Made by a program: the position numbers and the translations under genes. Below are positions 3,805 to 51,441 of a stretch of 64,000 bases of DNA, piece by piece. Below the pieces are notes generated by a model. It searched no databases. It saw nothing but the letters and a program-made list of their open reading frames with translations, and had not been told where the DNA came from. How positions within the stretch are numbered: the stretch's first letter is position 1; each line of letters begins with the position of its first letter. The stretch lies in sequence record NC_031039.1. The stretch is one strand, 5' to 3'.

Positions 3805-5700
3805 TTGGAAAAGACTTATAATTTAAATGATATTCTATTATCAAATGAGTATGAAAAAATTAAAGAGGATATCAAGGAAGAAATAATTAATGATATGGCA
3901 TCTAAGAAAGTAAAGTATAGTAATACTTCTGAATTTGCTAAAAATGACTTTCTTAAAGATGAATTCATTGATTTAGTTGTTGATGGGGAAACATATGAAA
4001 TTACATATGGAAATCTAATCACATTATTAATTGTTGCAAGACCATTTAATCACTTTAAAGTACCAATGACTGAAGATTTATTATTTGATCTATCTGATTT
4101 AAAAGAATACCAAAATTATTATACTACATTGCTGGAACATTTTGGTTACAGTAATGAAATTAAATCCATTATTAAAGATGTTATTAGTGAGTTAGCAATT
4201 TTCTCTGGGGATATTAATGTAACATTTGGTAATACAGTTTCTATTAAATCACTTATTGACTTGGGAAATAAAGTAAAGAGATTTAGAGAATTATTACATT
4301 ATCGTTTACCAAATGATGAAGCATTGGAGTTTAATGATATTGAGGCTATTATTAAAAAGAATTTAGATGAAATTATGAAAATTCTTTCTGAAACTGATAA
4401 TATGCTAAGATATTATATTGATTCAGGTGCTGGTATTAACTCAAAACAATTTGGTCAAGTATTATCATTAGTAGGTTCTAAACCGGATTTATTTGGTAAA
4501 ATTATTCCTTATCCAATTAATACTAGTTTCCTAAGAGGATTAGATGTACGGTCTTTCTATATTAATGCTTTAGGGGCAAGAAAAGCTTTAATCACAAACT
4601 ATCAACAAGTAAGAAACTCTGGCTATCTAACAAGAAAAATTAGTATGTTATTGATGGATACAAAATTAATTGATTTAGATGATTGTGGAAGCCATGAAAA
4701 CAACTATCTTTCAATTAATGTTGAGAATAAAGATGTTCTAAAAAGATTCTCTAAAAGAAGTTATTTAAATAATAATGGTGAATTAGTTGAAATTGATATT
4801 AATGATGAAAGTCTAATTGGACAGGTAATAAAAATTCCTTCTCCAACTACTTGTGCATCTAATGAAGGCGTTTGTCGTAAATGTTATGGTAAATTGTTTG
4901 ATATCAATAAAGATTTAAATATTGGCATGATTGCAGTTCTACTATTAACAGATCCATTAACTCAGCGTTTATTAAGTGCAAAACACTTACTAGAGACTCG
5001 GTCTTCTAAGATCGATTGGGGAACTAATTTTGAAGAGAACTTTATCGTAAACAGAAACTTAATTTATCCTAAAGTTTATAATGGAACGGTTATTATTAAA
5101 GAAGATGATTTTAAAGAAGATGAGGAAACAGAAGAACAAGTATTTGATACATTTACTTTAAAAAGTGGTAATAGATTTATTTCTATTAGTTCACCAATGA
5201 GATTATTCCTAAATAAAGACCTTAAGAAACAACTTGATGAAAGCTTTTATAATATAGAAGAAATGCAATTTGAAATTCCATTAAATAAGCTTGATGAAGG
5301 CGATAGTTTTGCAACATTCATCATGGATAATAACGAATTATCAAAACCATTAAGGGAAATTAAAGATCTTATTGAAACTAATAAATATATTAAAGATCAT
5401 AATGTTAATGAAGTGGTAAACTATTTTATTTACCTCTTAAATGAATCAGGTATCAATATTCAGTCTGTTCATTCAGAGTTAATCATTAGAGAAATGATGA
5501 AACTAGATGATTCAGATAGAACACAATTTAAAAATGATAAAATGCCGGATTATGAAATCTTCCGTATTACAGATGCTAATTTAAAGGGAGATAGTCTATC
5601 AAGATCATTATTATTTGAGCAAGTTAAGAAACAGCTAACTACACTAGATTATGATACATTTAATAAAACAAAATCTTCAATTTTAGATAAACTACTTTAA
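3805..5700 (+). CDS. rpoC: Phage multisubunit RNA polymerase beta' subunit, C-terminal half (probably non-virion RNAP)
   Basis: Bridge helix QQVRNSGYLTRK..DLDDCG, Zn motif PTTC-x6-CRKCYG, trigger loop IGMIAV..TDPLTQRLLSAKH; TTG start after GGAGG; early-type promoter. Confidence 0.9.
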   Translation: MEKTYNLNDILLSNEYEKIKEDIKEEIINDMASKKVKYSNTSEFAKNDFLKDEFIDLVVDGETYEITYGNLITLLIVARPFNHFKVPMTEDLLFDLSDLKEYQNYYTTLLEHFGYSNEIKSIIKDVISELAIFSGDINVTFGNTVSIKSLIDLGNKVKRFRELLHYRLPNDEALEFNDIEAIIKKNLDEIMKILSETDNMLRYYIDSGAGINSKQFGQVLSLVGSKPDLFGKIIPYPINTSFLRGLDVRSFYINALGARKALITNYQQVRNSGYLTRKISMLLMDTKLIDLDDCGSHENNYLSINVENKDVLKRFSKRSYLNNNGELVEIDINDESLIGQVIKIPSPTTCASNEGVCRKCYGKLFDINKDLNIGMIAVLLLTDPLTQRLLSAKHLLETRSSKIDWGTNFEENFIVNRNLIYPKVYNGTVIIKEDDFKEDEETEEQVFDTFTLKSGNRFISISSPMRLFLNKDLKKQLDESFYNIEEMQFEIPLNKLDEGDSFATFIMDNNELSKPLREIKDLIETNKYIKDHNVNEVVNYFIYLLNESGINIQSVHSELIIREMMKLDDSDRTQFKNDKMPDYEIFRITDANLKGDSLSRSLLFEQVKKQLTTLDYDTFNKTKSSILDKLL

Positions 5701-5707
5701 TTAATAA

Positions 5708-5746
5708 AAAACAGTATAAAGGTCTATATGATCTTTATACTGTTTT
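5708..5746 (+). terminator. Intrinsic terminator after RNAP beta' gene
   Basis: AAAACAGTATAAAG...CTTTATACTGTTTT followed by T-rich tract. Confidence 0.7.
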
Positions 5747-5822
5747 ATTTTTACATATTAATGTATAAATAAATAAAAATATAGATAACAAAATATCAGA
5801 AATAAATTTAGGGAGAGATTTT

Positions 5823-23293: not shown

Positions 23294-23331
23294 AATAAAG
23301 GATAGAGACTATTTAGTCTTTATCCTTTATT
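23294..23331. terminator. Bidirectional terminator between convergent operons
   Basis: AATAAAGGATAGAGACT...AGTCTTTATCCTTTATT then poly-T. Confidence 0.8.
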
Positions 23332-25099
23332 TTTTTTTTGTATACTCAAAGACTAAATTTCCACAATCCCAAATTCTATCATAACCAGCTTCTCTCATAA
23401 TTTGAATTTCTGTTTTATCATTACTATAAATTTCTGGAAATAATTCTTTTAATCTTTGTTTTCTATAGTTGTATCTATGTGAAAGACTCAATTTATTTTT
23501 ATTAAAATACCAATAATTTGGCTGAGAGTTATGCATAAAGTGAAAGCTATTTTTATGATATACATTTCCTTCTGACCATCTTAAATCAGCATATGTTATG
23601 ATTTTATTCCAATCATAATTCTTTTTAAAATAACTGAATAATTTTCCAAAACTACCTATTACATTATAGTCTCTTTCTGTAGCAAATCTACTTAATTCAT
23701 AGTCATATTTATTCCCTTTTTGCCCTAAGCTAACTCTAGGTTTACAGAATGTCATTACTGCTACTAACTCATCACCCTCATTCCTTGGATACCATAGTCC
23801 TAGTTTAATAGTAGAGTTATCAGATCCTTGAATATGATTTTTATCTAAAAAATCTCTTTTCACATTATTCTGAATTTCTTCTATATAACATTTTCTAGCA
23901 TATATTTTTTCTCCATTATTTAAACCTAAAATATGTTTTATCTTTCCCTTTATAAGTTCTTTATTATCAATCCACTCATTCTCAAATAAATGAATTAATC
24001 TTATACCCTTTTCATTACATTTTTTCAATTTATTTAAATGGTAGTTTCTATCTTTTCCTTGAGATTCACCATGCCAATATAAACCGTTATATTCAATTGC
24101 TATTTTCTTTGAAGGTATATAAATATCCAGTTCTAAACCTTCAAGTATTTTTCTGTCTGATAGAATTACATTAGTGCTATTGGGGAGAATTTGTTTAATA
24201 TAATCATATAATTCAATCTCATCTTTTGAATTATGTTTCTTTAGTTGACATCTGGGACAATCTCTTTTAACTTTTTTACCTCTTGAATTACCATGTAAAA
24301 TATCGACCGGTCTAACCTCCCAAGAATAACCACATGAATGCTCAATAACTATTGGAGTTTTATTATTAATATATCTACTCTTAATTGTATAATCATTACT
24401 ATTAAATATTCTATAAAAATCTTCTTTAAAACCATTAGATCCTTTATTTTTTGGTTTTTTATTACATATATTACACCTTTTTCTTTTTAGGAAATTAGTT
24501 GGTGTAATAAAGAAATTATGAGAATCACTAGTATTGTGTCTCATCTCAATTTTATCTTGAGAGCTAATATATTCTCCTAATACAGTATATTCATCTCCTA
24601 CTAAATCATATACTTCTTTAATAAACATTTCAGTAGTCTTTGTCTTTTTCCTTTTTATTAGTTTCTTAGTACAATCAGGACATCTTGAACCCTTACTGAG
24701 AAAGTCATTAGGTCTTTTTTTAAATTCCTTATTACAGATGTTATGTCTAAGTAATACTAGTTTAGAACTATTAATATATTCTCCTAATACAGTATATTCA
24801 TCCCCTACTAAATCATACACTTCTTTAATAAACATTTCAGTAGTCTTATTTTTTCTTTTAGATATTCTCTCTGATTTATGTAAAGGACATCTATTACCTG
24901 CATTTAAAAAGCCATTTGGTGTGACATAGTATTCATGACTGCATTTTTCATGTTTCATTTTTATTTTATTATTAGTTCCAGTATATTCTCCTAATACAGT
25001 ATATTCATCCCCTACTAATTCATACACTTCTTTAATAAACATTTCAGTAGTCTTCTTTTTAGGCAAAACAATCATCCTTTTATATAAATTGGATTTCAA
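23327..25099 (-). CDS. Free-standing homing endonuclease-like protein (zinc-ribbon repeats + PD-(D/E)xK + Hef-like C-terminus)
   Basis: Repeats KTTEMFIKEVY.LVGDEYTVLGEY..H..C...RCP.C; ELDIYIPSKKIAIEYNGLYWH; C-terminal YELSRFA..YADLRWS..IWDCG. Confidence 0.75.
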   Translation of the reverse strand: MKSNLYKRMIVLPKKKTTEMFIKEVYELVGDEYTVLGEYTGTNNKIKMKHEKCSHEYYVTPNGFLNAGNRCPLHKSERISKRKNKTTEMFIKEVYDLVGDEYTVLGEYINSSKLVLLRHNICNKEFKKRPNDFLSKGSRCPDCTKKLIKRKKTKTTEMFIKEVYDLVGDEYTVLGEYISSQDKIEMRHNTSDSHNFFITPTNFLKRKRCNICNKKPKNKGSNGFKEDFYRIFNSNDYTIKSRYINNKTPIVIEHSCGYSWEVRPVDILHGNSRGKKVKRDCPRCQLKKHNSKDEIELYDYIKQILPNSTNVILSDRKILEGLELDIYIPSKKIAIEYNGLYWHGESQGKDRNYHLNKLKKCNEKGIRLIHLFENEWIDNKELIKGKIKHILGLNNGEKIYARKCYIEEIQNNVKRDFLDKNHIQGSDNSTIKLGLWYPRNEGDELVAVMTFCKPRVSLGQKGNKYDYELSRFATERDYNVIGSFGKLFSYFKKNYDWNKIITYADLRWSEGNVYHKNSFHFMHNSQPNYWYFNKNKLSLSHRYNYRKQRLKELFPEIYSNDKTEIQIMREAGYDRIWDCGNLVFEYTKKK

Positions 25100-25129
25100 C
25101 TATTATTTTGTTTAGTTGAAATCCAATTT
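25086..25129 (-). promoter_or_regulatory. 17-bp inverted repeat whose 10-nt loop is exactly the late promoter AACA-N6
   Basis: Arms 25086-25102 and 25113-25129; minus-strand loop AACAAAATAA followed by TA. Confidence 0.6.
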
Positions 25130-25145
25130 GTTTATCAATAAAAAA

Positions 25146-28100
25146 TTATTCTGAATATATTTTACCAATTTCTCGTTTAAGATGTACTAATGCTTTGTTT
25201 AAATATAGAGCATTATAAATATCAACGGTCATGCGTGAAACGATACTTAATGGACTCATAATGGCTTCAATGTTCTCATCTGGATCATTCTCACTAAAAG
25301 GCTCTTGATCTTTAGGAATAACATCAGATACAATTGTCTTAAGTGCTGTATAATACGTAATCTTATCTCCAATACCAAGTTCATCATCATACTCAATATA
25401 AATCTCAATGAGTAGTCCATCTACCTCAGTACCTTTAATTTTCTCACCTGATTGCTTTTGAATAGGTTTAAGATTAACAGAAGTCAGATCATTAGTAACA
25501 GACTTAATCTTATCTTCTTTCTTCTTACTATCTTTAATATAGTTCTTCAGAATCTTTTGTACTGAAGGAGAAAACTCACTGATATCCTTATTGTAATACA
25601 TTACAACATCTACAATCTTACCAGTATATTTAGAACTTACCTTGTTCTTAGATAACTCATTAATAGTCTCATTAAAGTCATCTCCTAGTTTATCTAAGAG
25701 TTGGTTGAGTGATTTATCTTCAAAGGAGTTTTCAAAGATAATCAATGGATCACCAGTCTTAACCATATCGCCTTTCTTAACAATAAAGTCAATGTTTGAG
25801 TTAACTCCAAGAGCAAGTTCTTTCTTCATAGTAATTTTAGTAGATAGGTCTTGAGATAAGCTTTCTGTGATAATACTACTATCTTCATACGTGTAATCTG
25901 CGCTTGCTAGTGCTACTTTACAAAGCTTCCCTGTAGTATACGTGATATCATCTTTCTTATCGCCAAGGAAGTAACTTGGATTCTTCGCTAGGATATCATC
26001 TTTTTTGAATTTCTCTCCTACTTTGATAATGAGTTCTTTACGATTAGCAATGTAAACAATTATCTTCCACCAAATTCGCTAGTTTTGGTGCGCCCTCTAA
26101 CGGACTGCTCCATGTTACCATGAAGTTGAGACTATATCTTCAAAGTTCCCTGTTTCCCAGTATACATAAATAAAAGTATACCAGATTTCATCTCAGAAAC
26201 CTGCCACCAATCGCTTGTGGGGTACTCTACTCATCTTTATTAATAAGATTTTCGATAGTCGTTGAACGTTCTCTATTAGTTTAATAGAGCTTCGCTTCTG
26301 ATTATCCTTTTAATAAGGACTTCCCAGAAATTAAAGGAATTTAACGTGAGCCTTTAAACCCACCATTACTATTCTTACTCATATGCTCGGAGAGATCAAT
26401 GACGTCTTTCTTACCATCATTATAACGAACGACAGCTAGTTCATGTTCTTCATCTATGGACTCTAGAACCCCATCTTTTTTTGCTCTAAACACAAAGTCG
26501 TCACTTAGAATATAAGCAACAGTCTTCTCTACACCACTACCAAATAGAGGTTTAGATTGCTTTGTGGTAGGAATGATCGTTAACTTCCATTAGATTCGCT
26601 ACGTCTAATGCGTTCTCTTATGAACTGCTCTATATTTCTATAGAGACGAGACTATATCACTATCCTTATCTATTAAGGATAACCCCCATTTCCATTTAAG
26701 GGATTCTCACCCACTCCAATCGCTTGAGCCGTACTCCTATTGCGGAATTTCACCGCTACTCACAATCCTAAGATTGCTTTCGGATAGTCGTTGAACCTTA
26801 CTCATAAAGAGTCTTGGATGCTGATTGCCCATATATCCTTTAGATTGTTACACTTTGGTACTAAAGGCTTTAGGATTTTCCAGCAGTTAAAGGGTTTTGC
26901 TAGCAATATTACTACTACTAGGCACGAATCATGCTTTTGCTGCGTTGTTTGCATTCCAACGCGCGGTGGGTCGGCATGACGAGCAGTAAAGGAGTTTAAT
27001 AACTCTGCCGGACCATAGATATTTGTCGTATTATTTTTTGTATTTGGATTGGTGTCTAAGAATCCTCGTGTGTTTTTGAATGCTGGATCAAAAGTTAACT
27101 GTCTAACCCATTACCTTCATATAGGTTCGCTACGCCTATACCGTTCTCTTATGAACTGCTCTATGTTACCATAGAGATGAGACTATATCTTTATCTAGTC
27201 AAAAAAAAAAGAAAGGAGATGACTAGATATCTCCCATTTCCATTTAAGGGATTCTCACCCACTCCAATCGCTTGAGCCGTACTCCTATTGTGTGTTAACC
27301 ACTAAAGGATAGTCGTTGAACGTTACTCTCGTTATAATTAAAAATAATTTATAAAACCGTTTTTCTCAGCAATTTCTTTTCTAAAAGTAATTGCTAGTTC
27401 TTTAGCTTTTTCAAAACCATATTTATTGACTGCAAATGTTTTAATAAATTTTTTATGATTAACACGGATTTCAGATTCCCATCTATTTTTCTTTTTAGAA
27501 TATCTTATTCCTTTAATTCCAGAAGTATTATCGTTTCTTAGTGATGTATTTCTATTATTCATCATTTGAGAAACCTCACGCAAATTACTTTTTCTATTAT
27601 TTAAACTATTTCTATCTATATGATCAATTACATTATTATTATCTTTAATATCCATTAGGTATCTATGAAGCTTTCCACCTGAATTACTTGAAATATAAAA
27701 TGAATTATTTCTTTTAGACCAGATAGCTCTCCAAACATGCTTATTTATTTTATCAATATCTTCAATATCAATTTGAGATTTTACGATACCATATGTTTTT
27801 GAAAAAGTAACTAATAATGCATGATCATCTAATACTTCAATAAAATTATATGCTCTTTTTCCTTCTTTTAATGTTTTCATAGCTATACGCTCACTATAAT
27901 CTCCATATAAAACTTCTGAATAATGTGCAAGGGAATTTGATTTCTTTTCTTTATTATAGAAACTTACTCTCCATAATTTTTGTTCTTTTAGATATATTAT
28001 TTTATTTTTTTCCATAATAGTAGCTCTCCTTTTTAACTTACTACTATTATAATATATATTTAACGAGAGTCTTCGATACGGATTGTCCTATTATTAGGAG

Positions 28101-31100
28101 TTTCCCGTAGTTAGAGAGATTTTATCATTATATATCACTATATAAGGGGGCAGTTTAATTCACCCCAACTTTCATTATCTTCCACTAGATTCGCTACATC
28201 TAATGCGTTCTCTTATGAACTGCTTCATGTTACCATGAAGATGAGACTATATCATCATCCTATTAGGATGCCTCCCATTTCCAACTCCAATCGCTTGAGT
28301 TGTACTCTACTCCCTTCCTTCTAACTAGCGTTATCACAACGATCTGTTAGAGTGGTTTCGATAGTCGTTGAACCTTACTCTAATGAGTCTTGGATGCTGA
28401 TTGTCCTTAAAGGATTTTCCAGCAGTTAAAGAGGTTTACTTATAATATTTCTATTATAAGGGACTATTATAAATCTTGTCTGGGAATTCAAGAATTATAA
28501 TAATTCAATCCGAGTCGGGTGTTGACATTGCCATGATTCCACGCATACTAGGGTCATAAGCACGAATATCAGTTGTGTAAGCATCCGTTTTCTTCATATA
28601 GGTTCGCTACACCTATACCGTTCCTTAGAACTGCTCTAAGTTTCCTTAGAGACGAGACTATATCATCACTTAAAAAGTGCCTCCCATTTCCAGCCTCAAT
28701 CGCTTAGACTGTACTCTACTCCCTTCCACTAACTAGCATTATTGTAATGATCTGTTAGAGTGGTTTCGATAGTCGTTGAACCTTTACCTTATTACAAATA
28801 ATTTGTAACTTAGGTACTTGGTTGCTTATGATTACCCAATCCTTTAAATTTTTACCATACCTGAATTGTTATATTCAGCCATCTATTATGTTTCCATATA
28901 GATTTGGTATTAAAGGCTCTAAGGGTGTTCCAGCAGTTAAAGAGGTTTTAATTGGACTAAACACTTTAATCCAAGTTTCTTCCTGAAAGCCCCTTGTAAG
29001 TAGCCGCACCACCCTTTTCAATTTCCAAAGAAGGGTTAAGGACACTATATTCATCGACAGTAGGTGAATTCATTAATGTCTTTAATAGAATATCCTGTGG
29101 AACAGACATCTTAATAGGATTACCAGCTTTCAGTGTATCCTTATACGTTTTAAATGAATCTGCCAAGATTTTATATAAGTAGGCATTTACTTGCTCAGTA
29201 CCACGAATTCGATATGAACTCATATCATTCAGTGGACTATAGCTCATATCTTCCAATAAGGTATTCGCATACAACAATATGTCATAGATATTCTCAGGTA
29301 ATTCTAACTGTTTCAGTACATCTAATGTGATAGGATCAACCATTAGAGATAGAGTATTATGAAGACCTTTACCCATATTTCTGCTACCGAACATCTCATA
29401 GAAAGTTTCAATATAAGGATCTTTAGAGTTCATTTCTTCAAATGTATACTCTTCAGTAGCCATTGTACTTAGACCACTTAATAATAGGGAATTTCTCAAT
29501 AAAGAATTATTATAATATAGGTATCCATCTTTAAAACGGATCTTGTCATAGTCATCATCAATTGTAATTCTCTTATTCTTAGTATCAAAGCTATATTCAA
29601 TATTATATCTTTCTAATAAATCTTCTAATCCTAATTCATATCCAAGAAGAACCACAAGGGGAATCATTCTATTATTGATACGAACTCGGTTATATGCTAG
29701 AGACTTAGAATTACTTAAAGAAGATAATTTTTTATAAGCTTCCTCACTAAGTGAAGTAACAATAACTTTAATAATGAGTTCTGAAAGACTCATATCAGTA
29801 TTTTCTTGTTTCTTATTATTAATCAGATAAACTCTTTTACTTGAACGCTTAAGAGCAATAACGTTTTCATTATCTTTTGTATGACCGATTGGTAAGAATT
29901 GTTTATCGTCAATATTAATCTTAGCAAGCTTAGCCATATTATCAAGATCACTTTTCAATAAATCTTCTACTTCTTTTTGACTGAACATAAGTTTATATTC
30001 ATCATTCTCTAAGCTTAGAAGGAAGGAAGAGATCTCATTATATTCAAGAGTTGTTTCATATCCCTCATTAATTGTAAGAGCATTACCTAAGCGATAATTA
30101 AACTTCTTACCTGATACCTTAAATTCATTTAAATCCATACCAAAGAGTTTCTTAAGTTTCTCAGTTTTATGAGATAGTTTAGAACCAAAACGCATGACAA
30201 AGAATTTATTATAGTTAGTAGTAATCTGAACTTCATCAGGTTTTGTTTTTACAATTGGTAGAGATAGAATTTGTTTCAAAATCAATTTTTTACCACCATT
30301 AATATTCATAAACCTACCATCTCTGATAATAGGATAATCGAATTTAACAGTATGCTTTACATTACGGTCATCTTGGAAAGTAACAGTATAAGTTAGTTTC
30401 TTTGATAAATCAGTAGATGTGTCTTCTGTTTTAATATCACTTACAAATAATTTAACATCACTATCTCCATTAAATGATGAAAGAACTGCAACTAAGTCTT
30501 TTTTCATCTGTTTCTCAAAGTAGCTCATATCAAAATCTTTAAGATTTGAATATCTAGTTTCTTCTTGAATGACATTTGTATTGGTAATTGGCTTTCGGTC
30601 AATACTTGTTGATTTAAAGTCATCAATAATATCCTGAATATTAATATCATCAAGAGTAACTTGTTTTTGTTTTTCTTTTAAACGTTCAAGAGTCTTTCTC
30701 TGTTTAATTTCATCTCCACCAGTAGACTGAAGCTCTTTAAGAGTTGAAACATCAGCTTTTAATTCCTTACTGTTATTTAAGATATCAATGATTTCATCTT
30801 CACTTTTATCAAGAATATCTTCATCACTTGAATCAATAGCTTTTTCAATATCATCACCAATCTTATCAGTAACTTCAATTGCACTACTAGATAGTTTTGT
30901 ATTTCCATCGATTTGGAAATTACTTAATAATTTTTCTTTAACTTTTTCAGATTTTTCTTTTACTAATGCATCTCTCTTGTTTTCTGTTTCTTGAGTTGCC
31001 TCTTCCTTACCTAGAGGTTTTTCATCATTATTAGTCTTCTGATGATTTGCTGTTTTAATAAGAATATTTAATGCATTAAGGAATCTATTTGCAAGAAGAT

Positions 31101-31764
31101 TAGAAAGTTCATCATTAATATTAAATTTAATAAATGTATTATTAACAGTAGTGTAAAAAATAAAATCTACATTTTTAAGTTCTTTCTTCTGTTCCTCTGT
31201 TAATAGCTTTCTCTTAATTGCCATATAGATATAAGCAAAAGGTGTTCTTGCATTATTTAAGTCAAAGAATGATGGATCAAGAACATTGTCAGGAACAGGA
31301 ATTGCTACTGCTTTATTCTCATATGATGCACCCTCTTTAATTTTAGATATAAGAAAATCAAAATACATTTCAACTCGTTTTCTTCCACGAACTTTAATCT
31401 CTACTTCATTCTCAAGATGCTCATTTGTAATATCATAGATCAAGTTAAGATCATTATAATTAGTTAAAGCACGTTTAGTATAAATAATACTAGAGCATTT
31501 TGCTTTTACCTCATCATAATATTTCTTTTGATCTACAATAATTCTTTTATTCTTCTGAATGGTATTGAATGCTCTTGGAATATATACTCCTCTAAAAAAA
31601 GAAGGACTGAATATATTAGAATTAATAAAATCAAATATCTCACTTTGATTATTTCCTGAAAAGAAAATCAAATTTGAATTACGGTCATTTTTCCTTTTTT
31701 TAATGGATGAAAGTTTTATATTAGAGTACACTCTCAATTCCTTGAGATTATCAAGATAAAACAA
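25146..31764 (-). CDS. rpoB: Phage RNA polymerase beta subunit, N-terminal half (probably virion RNAP); six exons, about 1397 aa after splicing
   Basis: Exons 31764-28969, 28585-28508, 28172-28162, 27108-26931, 26577-26358, 26056-25146 join in frame giving GLSGRNLD|DAYT..STPDSD|KVGV|VRQLTFDP..HADPPRVGMQTTQQKH|IIP..NSNGG|FYI..YTYEDS, collinear with beta motifs GPGG, TPEG, DDANRALMG.NMQRQ, RSNQ, GYNYED; late promoter at 31790. Confidence 0.9.
26057..26357 (-). mobile_element. Group I intron 5 of RNAP beta (301 nt)
   Basis: P1 GUGGGU|/GCUCAC; P10 UAAA/UUUA; P7 elements; terminal G. Confidence 0.9.
26578..26930 (-). mobile_element. Group I intron 4 of RNAP beta (353 nt)
   Basis: P1 GCAU|/GUGC; P10 GAU/AUC; P7 elements; terminal G. 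Confidence 0.9.
27338..28015 (-). CDS. Intron-encoded HNH-AP2 homing endonuclease
   Basis: LHRYLM..IDHIDRNSLNNRKSNLR (HNH); NTSGIKG..W...F.V.KYG...A (AP2); possible second AP2-like segment at the N-terminus; own SD AAGGAG. Confidence 0.9.
   Translation of the reverse strand: MEKNKIIYLKEQKLWRVSFYNKEKKSNSLAHYSEVLYGDYSERIAMKTLKEGKRAYNFIEVLDDHALLVTFSKTYGIVKSQIDIEDIDKINKHVWRAIWSKRNNSFYISSNSGGKLHRYLMDIKDNNNVIDHIDRNSLNNRKSNLREVSQMMNNRNTSLRNDNTSGIKGIRYSKKKNRWESEIRVNHKKFIKTFAVNKYGFEKAKELAITFRKEIAEKNGFINYF
28014..28061 (-). promoter_or_regulatory. Intron-internal early-type promoter plus start-codon-sequestering hairpin
   Basis: AAATATATATTAT at 28061-28049; perfect 10-bp stem 28041-28050/28014-28023 with the SD in the loop. 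Confidence 0.7.
28162..28172 (-). other. 11-nt micro-exon AAAGTTGGGGT (K-V-G-V)
   Basis: Lies between terminal G of intron 2 and P1 of intron 3; needed to keep the frame. Confidence 0.85.
28173..28507 (-). mobile_element. Group I intron 2 of RNAP beta (335 nt)
   Basis: Long P1 GGAU|U/AGUCC; conserved P4 AACUGCUGGAA and P7 elements; terminal G. Confidence 0.85.
28586..28968 (-). mobile_element. Group I intron 1 of RNAP beta (383 nt)
   Basis: P1 GGAU|UAA/UUAGUCC with U.G pair; P7 GACUAUC/GAUAUAGUC; terminal G; P10 AAGUGUU/GAUGCUU. Confidence 0.9.
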
Positions 31765-31818
31765 TTATACCCACTTCCTTTCTTAACAATATCTATTTGT
31801 TTACATAAGAAATTAAAA

Positions 31819-49105: not shown

Positions 49106-51441
49106 ATGGCAGATGAACAGCAAAACGTTGATGAACAACAGTCACAGATAATTGGAGATGAGTTTTTCCAAGAAGGTAACTCTAATTCAGATTCAAAAGG
49201 TGGATTTGGAACAAGTGTAGAATATACTGATGGTTTTGAAGCGTTAATTGGATCTTCTAAGGGTGGTTCTGGTTCTTATGCTACACCTACATGGAATCCA
49301 TATAAATCAGATAGTGTATTAGGATTACCTTTATACTATAATGATTTAGCGGATCCTTCGGGAAGAGTATACAATCAAACCATTATTCAAGATATTCCTA
49401 ATATATACATGGTTCCCGGAATTCCATCTATTAATAGAAATATGATTGACGTAGCAGGAAAACGTATTATTCCTGCTACTCTTTCTCGTGCATTAATGGA
49501 TTTTCAAAATAATCCAAATAGTATTTTTAATTTTGGAGTTAGAGGAGTAAAAAGTGGTAATGACCTTCGTTTCATAGGGTTTAAAGCAGATTATTCTGAA
49601 TACTTTAAATATGTACAAACTATGTTAAGTACTATACATTCATATATGGCAATGGATGGCATATTTGATTTATATAGATTCTCAGATGACTTTAATAATA
49701 GTTTTAAAAATTATGGATTATGTTTTTATGCAGATAAATCTACAACTATTTCTGAGTCAGCTGATAATACTTATGCGGCTTCTAGAACAGCAGAAATGGT
49801 AAGTGAGAAAGCGGCTACTTTAAGGGAAGCAGATTTATTATATCCTACAGGAAGTACAACATCTCGTATTGTTGACTCAATTAAAGCGGCTAATCCAATT
49901 GGTGTACTAGAATCATTAGGTTCATTTGATGGAATTATCACTCGTACATCAAATGCATTATTTCGTGTTGTAAATGGATCACAATTAATGTTCCCTGACT
50001 TTTGGCAAGATTCTAGATTTGATAAATCTTATAATATTAGTTTCAAATTTTATAGTCCTTATGGTGATAGAGAAAGTATATTTAGATATGTGTATGTACC
50101 TTTTATAGCACTATTAGCATTAGCATTGCCTTAAATGACGGGGCAATTAAAACTCTTTTAACTGCTGGAACATCCTTAGAGCTTATTAGACTACAACGTG
50201 ACTGGTGACAGTGAGCGTGAATGTTTAAAAACTAATAAGATTGGACAATCAGCAACTAGTTAAAACTTCCACATGGAAGTTACTAGCTCAACGACTATCG
50301 AAACCACATCATTTGATGGAAGGAAGTAGAGTACCCCACAAGCGTGGTTACATTTAGGCATAAATGTAAGTATAGTAAACTAATACTATATGGGAAACAA
50401 AGAGCATGATGAAGGCAAAAAGCTGGAGTGAAGATATAGTCTCAACTTCTATGGAAACATAGAGCAGTTCATAAGAGAACGCACTGAAGTAGCGACTCAG
50501 TGGAAGGTTATGCGTCAAGACGGTTTATTAGGATATCAGCAACCATTCTTTGTAAGAATGTCTCGTCCGGGTTAACTAAATAGCTCGGCTTATGAGTAAT
50601 CATAAGAAACAATCATTCTCTAATTGCTGGAAAGTCTTAACATGTTGTGATGAAGATAATCAGCAGCGAAGATTATTAGTTTTAGATTGTGTAATAAAAA
50701 ATTATATCAATAGTAAAATAAACAAAATAATATAAAAATAATTATTGTAAGATTAATAATATTCCACTTTTAAGAATACCATATAAATATAGGGATACTG
50801 TTGATATAATTCTAGAAGACTTCTTTACTAATAATAACGTTCAACGACTATCCGAAAGTAATCGTTAGATTATGAGTAGCCTAAAAATAGGCAATAGGAG
50901 TACGGCTCAAGTGTTTGGAGTGGGTGAAAATCCCTTAAATGGAAACGGGAATCCCCTCTTTAGAGAGGGTGAAGATATAGTCTCATCTCTATGGAAACAT
51001 AGAGCAGTTCATAAGAGAACGCATTAGATGTAGCGAATCTAATGGAAGGTAATGTATTTTGACATAGATATGGGAGTAGTAACAAGCTTAACTATCACTA
51101 AAGGCGGAGCTGATAGTCTTTGGACAGTTGACGGTCATCCGCAAATGATTGAAGTTAATATGAACGTAGTAGATTTATATCCACAAATGATCCAAATTAA
51201 AGATATTGGTTTACTTGCATATAATCTGGGAATTGCATCATTCTTAGAAAACATGGCAGGAATAAGACCAGACCAATTAAGTTTTCTTAAATTTAAATCA
51301 TTAATTAATAGAAAACTATCAAATTCATTATTGTTTACTACTTTCCTTGATGGAGGTTCAGGAATTAAAGATAGAGTTGGTAATAAATTTGCTGACTTCT
51401 TCTATGAACTACAAGGTAAGTTTAATAATATATTAAGATAA
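49106..51441 (+). CDS. Tail tube initiator/baseplate protein; three exons, about 490 aa after splicing
   Basis: Exons 49106-50131, 50513-50572, 51055-51441 join as LALALP|RQDGLLGYQQPFFVRMSRPG|YFDIDMGVVTSLTITKGG; follows the tape-measure gene. Confidence 0.75.
50132..50512 (+). mobile_element. Group I intron A (381 nt)
   Basis: P1 UUGCCU|/GGGCAA; perfect P10 UGACG/CGUCA; P7 GACUAUC/GAUAUAGUC; terminal G. Confidence 0.9.
50573..51054 (+). mobile_element. Group I intron B (482 nt) with AT-rich P6 extension
   Basis: P1 CCGGGU|/GCUCGG; P10 AAAUA/UAUUU; P7 elements; terminal G. Confidence 0.9.

Follow-up and report, generated by a model that had tools for sequence, protein, structure and literature searches.

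A predicted 11-nucleotide exon between two group I introns in a virion RNA polymerase gene of Bacillus phage AR9

We analysed a 64,000-nucleotide (nt) stretch of sequence record NC_031039.1 (the window), in which an exon of only 11 nt appears to lie between two group I introns of an RNA polymerase gene. Positions 25100-31800 matched Bacillus phage AR9 (KU878088) in a megablast search with 100% identity over the whole query, and record coordinates are obtained by adding 124000 to those of the window. The micro-exon site lies on the minus strand inside AR9_g189, which GenBank annotates as 'DNA-directed RNA polymerase beta subunit, N-terminus; virion RNAP subunit' with a six-piece join (149146-155764) and therefore five introns. 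Its product, gp189, is present in AR9 virions (PMC5312081). All five introns were recognised by the Rfam model RF00028 with 102.4, 76.6, 76.3, 69.2 and 50.8 bits (gathering threshold, 50 bits). We set their boundaries by the U before the 5′ splice site, the G at the intron end and the 3′ tail that these paralogues share. Joining the exons of this model resulted in a 4194-nt open reading frame (ORF) without internal stops, which encodes 1397 amino acids (aa) and reads STPDSDKVGVVRQLT across the site. The start and end of the spliced model are those of the GenBank coding sequence (CDS), an agreement that covers the overall span and the number of pieces.

On the minus strand, ...GTAGCGAATCTAGTGGAAGATAATG is followed by the micro-exon, AAAGTTGGGGT, and then by GAATTAAACTGCCCCCTTATAT.... 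The final G (28173) of the sequence 5′ of the micro-exon, ...GGAAGATAATG, is the end of a group I intron whose RF00028 match at 28223-28482 (102.4 bits) covers the full model (1-253). On the 3′ side, GAATTAAACTGCCCCC... is the start of a 1053-nt group I intron with an HNH-AP2 ORF. Translating a spliced model without exon 3 gave ...STPDSDG and then a stop, which agrees with the frameshift that an earlier reading of the DNA, made from the letters alone (the sequence-only reading), had foreseen for exon skipping. An alternative 3′ site of intron 2, GAAG/ATAATG, is in frame and would add two residues. We ruled it out because no homologue has an insertion there and because the later G is where each of the paralogous introns ends.

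A homologue search with residues 860-1180 of the spliced product as the query returned 143 relatives, 120 of them listed. Most of the listed relatives are uninterrupted ORFs of ~1300-1500 aa on metagenomic contigs. Every listed relative that spans the site has exactly four residues from the TPDSD-like to the VRQLT-like block, with no gap relative to AR9. These residues follow the pattern x-[V/C]-G-[V/I], and the closest listed relatives read STPDSDKVGVVRQLT exactly. The sequence-only reading had named homologue alignments as the place where its exon might fail; none of the listed spanning relatives lacks the four residues. Two contigs provide empty sites that are colinear with the joined AR9 flanks, reading ...GAT AAA GTA GGG GTA GTG CGT CAG... 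(L008) and ...GAT AAG GTA GGG GTT GTT CGT CAG... (L009). Chance cannot explain the match of the predicted exon: about 120 homologues have four ungapped residues at this point, and in the nearest ones these are identical. In the predicted mRNA, both the frame and four conserved residues depend on the 11 nt. The predicted tryptic peptides across the two junctions are GIMAMSTPDSDK and VGVVR.

A further line of evidence is Goe21, which is ~97.6% identical to AR9 over the aligning regions and lacks AR9 introns 1, 2 and 3. Goe21 reads ...TTG GAT GAT GCT TAC...GAT AGT GAT AAG GT, followed by a 1358-nt intron and by T GGC GTA GTC CGG CAA CTC ACA. The AR9 D/K and GV/V junctions are therefore each uninterrupted DNA in Goe21, whose own intron sits 5 nt into the stretch that forms the AR9 micro-exon. 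The spliced ORF, the ungapped homologues, the contiguity in Goe21 and the empty sites together bear out the 11-nt exon that the sequence-only reading had placed at 28162-28172.

The same data bear on a quite different account, in which the 11 nt are no exon: either the stretch 28507-27109 would form a single composite intron or twintron, or we would be looking at the broken remnant of a gene that matches KVGV by coincidence. The exon is indeed short, and in the records of PBS1, Internexus and Goe21 the gene is divided into separately annotated fragments; nothing else counts for this account. Removing the whole block shifts the frame into an immediate stop, all listed homologues need the four residues, and the empty sites are colinear with the joined flanks. 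Moreover, Goe21 encodes the same DKVGVV with other codons and another intron position, and gp189 occurs in virions. We therefore find this account hardly credible, and its composite-intron, twintron and pseudogene versions are refuted by the frame, the ungapped homologues and the colinear empty sites.

The exon falls in a functionally telling part of the enzyme. In a sub-threshold phmmer alignment against PDB chains, TPDSDKVGVV aligns with TPEGPNIGLI of the Escherichia coli beta subunit. In this alignment MAMSTPDSDKVGVVRQLT... pairs with ...CPIETPEGPNIGLINSL..., collinear with significant bacterial beta matches downstream of the site. The sequence-only reading had claimed that the exon restores STPDSD-KVGV-VRQLT as the equivalent of a bacterial beta motif, and this alignment agrees with it. 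We take the TPEGPNIGLI segment to be rifampicin cluster II (E. coli beta residues 563-572), in which KVGV would presumably be N568-L571; this correspondence follows from the sub-threshold collinear alignment. Rifampicin cluster II lines the RNA-DNA hybrid channel, and 'active-site region', the earlier wording, is a fair if loose description. TPDSDKVGVV is the most conserved stretch of this part of the predicted protein.

Table 1. Features of AR9_g189 and its introns, in window coordinates.
Feature	Position	Strand	Remarks
Exon 1 of AR9_g189	28969..31764	-	2796 nt, ends ...AACTTGGAT; exon 1/exon 2 junction is contiguous DNA in Goe21
Intron 1, group I	28586..28968	-	383 nt; Rfam 69.2 bits; absent from Goe21
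Intron 1 internal guide sequence (IGS), GUCCAA	28957-28952	-	Pairs with UUGGAU; 6 contiguous pairs with own 5′ exon end
Exon 2	28508..28585	-	78 nt, encodes DAYTTDIRAYDPSMRGIMAMSTPDSD
Intron 2, group I, no ORF	28173..28507	-	335 nt; Rfam 102.4 bits; terminal G 28173
Intron 2 IGS, GUCC	28464-28461	-	Pairs with GGAU, end of exon 2; 4 contiguous pairs with own 5′ exon end
Exon 3, predicted micro-exon AAAGTTGGGGT	28162..28172	-	11 nt; K, V, G and first two bases of the next V codon
Intron 3, group I	27109..28161	-	1053 nt; Rfam 51 bits, 3′ half; ORF in P6 loop; terminal G 27109
Intron 3 IGS, (U)GCCCC	28152-28147	-	Pairs with GGGGU(G); GCCCC has 5 contiguous pairs with own 5′ exon end
Intron 3 P10, AACU	28155-28152	-	Pairs with GGUU, start of exon 4
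AR9_g190, HNH-AP2 homing endonuclease ORF within intron 3	27338..28015	-	225 aa; GenBank annotation
AAATATATATTAT, match to AR9 early-promoter consensus	28049..28061	-	Upstream of g190, within intron 3
Exon 4	26931..27108	-	178 nt, begins GGTTAGACAG; completes V, then VRQLTFDP...; contiguous with GV codons in Goe21
Intron 4, group I, site MQTTQQKH/IIP	26578..26930	-	353 nt; Rfam 76.6 bits
Intron 4 IGS, GUGC			4 contiguous pairs with own 5′ exon end
Exon 5	26358..26577	-	220 nt
Intron 5, group I	26057..26357	-	301 nt; Rfam 76.3 bits
Intron 5 IGS, GCUCAC			Pairs with GUGGGU; 6 contiguous pairs with own 5′ exon end
Exon 6	25146..26056	-	911 nt, to stop codon; end is the GenBank CDS end

How the splice sites are recognised was derived from the alignment of the five introns, which are paralogues with 55-78% identity. 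The terminal G at 28173 and that at 27109 are the homologous last G of a tail shared by all five introns, GAAGNNAA(N)YG, and in introns 1 and 3 the terminal G is also fixed by contiguous DNA in Goe21. All five guides lie at a homologous position, just before P2, and differ in sequence between introns. No guide pairs better with another exon than with its own 5′ exon; discrimination is not clean. The end of exon 3, for example, cross-pairs over 5 bp with the guide of intron 2, and those of introns 1 and 5 match it over 4 bp. As the sequence-only reading had it, five of the 11 exon bases form P1 of intron 3: the helix GGGGUG/UGCCCC is the predicted minimum-free-energy fold of the local sequence, takes nt 7-11 of the micro-exon and leaves nt 1-6 free. 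Intron 2 has a 43-nt structured insert in its P1 loop, and its 5′ region folds at z = -4.6.

P10 is a common but not obligatory feature of group I introns, and the five introns differ in this respect. Pairs in register were found in intron 3 (4 bp, GGUU with AACU) and intron 5 (3 bp), while intron 1 has a 7-bp offset match that is equalled by 2% of random 8-mers. Pair counting revealed no P10 in introns 2 and 4. For intron 2, there are 0 bp in register, and its best offset match is equalled by 62% of random exon 8-mers, which confirms that it lacks a good P10. The further idea that P10 of intron 2 and P1 of intron 3 compete for the same 11 nt did not hold up: without a P10 in intron 2, the two introns do not compete for these nucleotides at the level of base pairs. 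The RF00028 alignment, which is based on a general and not a subgroup-specific model, places a 60-90-nt insert between P7 and P3′ in all five introns; this is the position of the additional P7.1/P7.2 helices of phage-type (IA) introns.

Two complete group I introns with separate, differentiated guides flank the exon. We propose that it is a true 11-nt exon left between two independently inserted group I introns that lie 11 nt apart, and give this account as a whole a probability of roughly 80%. Each of the two has a recognition element of its own. Intron 2 holds the end of exon 2, GGAU, through its guide GUCC. Because intron 2 has no P10, its 3′ site must be defined by the terminal G and by the intron's own 3′ structure. 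In intron 3, a local hairpin pairs GCCCC with GGGGU, which is nt 7-11 of the micro-exon, and a 4-bp P10 aligns exon 4. Work with oligonucleotide substrates of the Tetrahymena ribozyme has established that a 5′ exon of 5-6 nt and a very short 3′ exon suffice for group I ribozymes. Five bases might accordingly be enough as the 5′ exon of intron 3, and the six free bases might be enough as the 3′ exon of intron 2. The two introns would then splice independently, with either order leading to the same mRNA. In intron 3, ~0.9 kb of sequence, including the 678-nt ORF, lies between the P1-P6 half and the P7-P9 half. Intron 2 is probably excised first in most cases for a kinetic reason, as it is complete once transcribed, and the polymerase has to pass the ORF and ~0.9 kb in all before it reaches the catalytic half of intron 3.

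Several points weigh against this account. Both the independence of the two introns and the order of their excision are things that we infer. P1 of intron 2 comprises only 4 bp plus a 2-bp intron extension, and the guide of intron 2, taken as GUCCC, also pairs with GGGGU of the micro-exon over 5 bp with two wobbles. Through this cross-pairing, some interference between introns 2 and 3 is possible. Finally, an exact look-up did not find the spliced 1397-aa protein in a collection of 15 billion sequences, and a 226-aa query spanning the junctions retrieved only relatives with 49-84% identity, without any 100%-identical fragment and without any sequence from AR9 mRNA.

Some of these features could be read instead as signs of obligatorily ordered or coupled splicing. 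The sequence-only reading had suggested that splicing may be ordered, a steric or kinetic idea that does not follow from the sequence. In this view, the two ~300-nt cores cannot both dock on 11 nt and the arrangement has evolved to enforce an order. Such a reading would fit the close spacing of P1 of intron 3 to the last G of intron 2 (6 nt), the absence of a P10 from intron 2, the delay of the intron 3 core by the 678-nt ORF, and the pairing of the intron 2 guide with GGGGU. Yet the two recognition helices share no base pairs, Internexus has lost the delay-giving ORF and kept the arrangement, and group I chemistry generally needs few exon nucleotides on each side. We consider enforced ordering unlikely: the sequence can be explained without it, and the chemistry would not require it either.

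A second possibility concerns the product and not the order. The 5′ site of intron 2 could be joined to the 3′ site of intron 3, so that the micro-exon is skipped at a significant level, either as noise or as a throttle on the virion polymerase. Introns 2 and 3 are paralogous, with 74% identity over the core and near-identical P7, J8/7 and 3′ tails, and with cores so similar some skipping may occur. Exon skipping has been documented in engineered tandem introns and in orf142 of Staphylococcus phage Twort, a gene with three group I introns in which two similar IA2 introns enclose a 23-nt exon (PMC10136302). By core identity and exon length, the AR9 pair falls within this Twort type of tandem. 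Like Twort, AR9 is a phage with multiple paralogous, apparently IA-type group I introns and a very short internal exon in one gene. At 11 nt, the AR9 exon has half the length of the 23-nt exon of Twort. Since this length is not divisible by three, skipping would be lethal to the product, and the guides on the two sides of the exon are clearly different. The guide of intron 3 pairs with the end of exon 2 over 1 bp only, and the P10 of intron 2 with exon 4 over 0 bp. In the engineered constructs, splicing became exclusively exon-including once the splice-site recognition elements were differentiated (PMC10136302). As the skipped AR9 product would stop at once and the enzyme is a virion component, we regard significant skipping as quite improbable.

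Skipping of a different exon is conceivable in principle. Introns 1 and 2 share the guide GUCC (28952-28957 and 28461-28464), and their 5′ exons both end in GGAU (28969-28972 and 28508-28511), so each guide fits the other's exon over 4 bp. In-frame skipping of the 78-nt exon 2 might occur through this shared guide.

The relatives of AR9 indicate how the arrangement may have come about. The 667 nt of compared exon sequence contain 26 differences between AR9 and Goe21. Sixteen of these fall between -13 and +26 of the micro-exon, and all 16 are synonymous. The codons fit the guide of the resident intron in each phage (AR9: TCGGAT and GGGGT; Goe21: AGTGAT, AAGGT and GGCGT). Homing with co-conversion from a diverged donor should leave such a synonymous cluster, and so should selection on P1 or the two together. 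With the Goe21 intron, three insertion sites are found within 11 nt (0, +5 and +11). Mobile introns may compete for the micro-exon site, and such competition would account for their clustering. Intron 3 has the hallmark of a mobile intron, an endonuclease ORF (g190) in a peripheral loop (P6). The domains of g190 are a Pfam AP2 domain (52.2 bits, above the cut-off) and HNH_3, which at 22.7 bits is just under its cut-off of 24.8. Intron 2, which lacks an ORF, has the same guide and target tetranucleotide as intron 1; this suggests, speculatively, that it arose by ectopic spread of an intron 1-like element.

The Goe21 intron at this hot spot (L003 5413-6770, at window position 28168/28167) contains a zinc-finger-repeat (Hef-like) ORF. 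The repeat is of the same type as in AR9_g188 (23327-25099, minus strand), a free-standing homing endonuclease of 590 aa ('Hef-like') that contains repeats of the TTEMFIKEVYDLVGDEYTVLGEY module and is encoded directly downstream of g189.

Intron 2, the 11 nt and intron 3 are all kept in both PBS1 sequences and in Internexus, where the exon and both guides are unchanged. The HNH-AP2 ORF of Internexus intron 3 has been deleted to a remnant (L004 6280-6330). Rfam recognises this intron as a whole (74.4 bits), with a match that starts inside the micro-exon. The P9 stem of Internexus intron 2 has two compensatory double changes relative to AR9. The intron 4 site is also filled in Goe21, Internexus and L009, and Internexus intron 4 contains a 368-aa ORF (L004 6936-8042) that is not in AR9 intron 4. 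A search for the junction pattern of intron 2, exon and intron 3 found only AR9 itself in IMG/VR and no instance in JGI metagenomes. A protein-guided scan of IMG/VR found AR9 and one 70% relative without an intron at the site. These scans did not reveal a genome with intron 2 alone or intron 3 alone.

The micro-exon locus was already known, and so was its kind; it is not a new kind of element, given the six-piece join in GenBank and the short exons documented in Twort, Coxiella and mitochondria. AR9_g189 of KU878088 (Lavysh et al. 2016, Virology 495:185) has the same locus, start, end and six pieces, with g190 annotated inside an intron. According to a preprint, mature mRNA sequences have been experimentally determined for AR9 (10.1101/2020.12.14.422802). 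Seven genomes of this phage group are public, and five of them (the three PBS1 records, Internexus and Goe21) show this essential gene as unrelated fragments without the micro-exon. The g189 orthologues of PBS1 (L002, L005), Internexus (L004) and Goe21 (L003) are given as two or three ORFs without a join, labelled 'hypothetical protein' and 'RNA polymerase beta subunit'. Automatic pipelines will mis-call such polymerase subunits.

Short exons between self-splicing introns are found in several other systems. In Coxiella burnetii 23S rRNA, a 34-nt exon lies between two group I introns and is subject to skipping (PMC10136302); in contrast to AR9, the gene encodes an rRNA, its two introns are of different subgroups and the exon between them is longer. 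Exons of less than ~4 codons between group I or group II introns 'occur regularly in mitochondrial genes' (PMC10352661), and tandem-intron arrangements occur in fungal mitochondrial genomes (PMC12308204). Like these mitochondrial mini-exons, the AR9 exon is recognised by residues that are missing from the protein alignment. The mitochondrial cases are organellar genes whose splicing is often protein-assisted, whereas AR9 has a phage gene with small introns that appear to be of the phage IA type.

The locus shows how densely mobile group I introns can be packed where the codons of an essential enzyme are most conserved, and provides a compact natural substrate for asking whether adjacent ribozymes interfere. 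Comparable targeting is reported elsewhere, in work cited in PMC12908238 and PMC13282480. Birkholz et al. 2024, in a study on an intron endonuclease of PhiPA3/PhiKZ, reportedly describe competing mobile introns in jumbo-phage RNA polymerase genes. The DNA polymerase genes of SPO1, SP82 and Bastille reportedly have introns at neighbouring alternative sites in related phages. In those cases as in AR9, homing-endonuclease introns target conserved codons of essential polymerase genes. The AR9 group is unlike them in having three sites within 11 nt, two of which are filled at once in one genome.

A comparable exon was found in another polymerase gene. A distant blastn match in Bacillus phage vB_BpuM-BpSp (BpSp; KT895374) might have been the same arrangement in an orthologue of g189; we rejected this, as it is a different polymerase gene with a micro-exon of its own. 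This gene is homologous to AR9 g089, which encodes the C-terminal part of the non-virion polymerase beta subunit, and the BpSp record gives it as a simple ORF (gp155). It reads ...ACG GGG AGA T, followed by intron A (guide GUCUCC, which pairs with GGAGAU; Rfam 83.1 bits), which ends in ...TAATTATAGTG. Then comes a 14-nt micro-exon, TCGGGAACAAGGGT (~4784-4797 of L013), and intron B, which starts with AAGCTAATAATGCCCC..., has an ORF and ends in ...AAAATTATG, before GTT ATT AGC GAA.... The two flanking introns are at ~4484-4783 and ~4798-5782. The joined product, GR-F-GNKG-VISEIVPDD, is colinear with the uninterrupted AR9 g089, which reads GRYGNKGVISKILPDD at the same place, and so BpSp has a 14-nt exon at the GNKG catalytic motif. 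This exon is a prediction and is not annotated in GenBank, which lists only the fragments gp155 and gp157.

Taken together, the 11-nt and 14-nt exons could be too short for two folded ribozymes at once, so that splicing of the virion polymerase mRNA would be strictly sequential. The three insertion sites within 11 nt, mutually exclusive and each with exon codons recoded to match the guide of its resident intron, could record an arms race in which introns contend for the one beta-subunit motif that is most conserved. We offer this as a doubtful proposal. If it is true, no phage would have a shorter studied exon between self-splicing group I introns, and the AR9 locus would be a natural system in which ribozymes interfere with each other.

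In g189, in-frame stops were found at the first codon of intron 1 (TAA, 28966-28968), at the first codon of intron 2 (TGA, 28505-28507) and two codons into intron 3 (TAA, 28154-28156). These early stops may keep ribosomes off the ribozyme cores. The five introns (26057-28968) are mosaic paralogues: the P7.1/P7.2 region groups introns 1 and 2 and introns 3 and 4, the P3-P6 region and the 3′ tail group introns 2 and 4, and the P9.2 hairpin groups introns 1 and 3. This grouping suggests recombination among intron copies within one gene. Elsewhere in the window, AR9_g205 (49106-51441, plus strand), which encodes a virion protein, is a three-piece join. One of its two introns was found at the Rfam gathering threshold (50111-50464), and the small ORFs g206 and g207 lie in the other interval.

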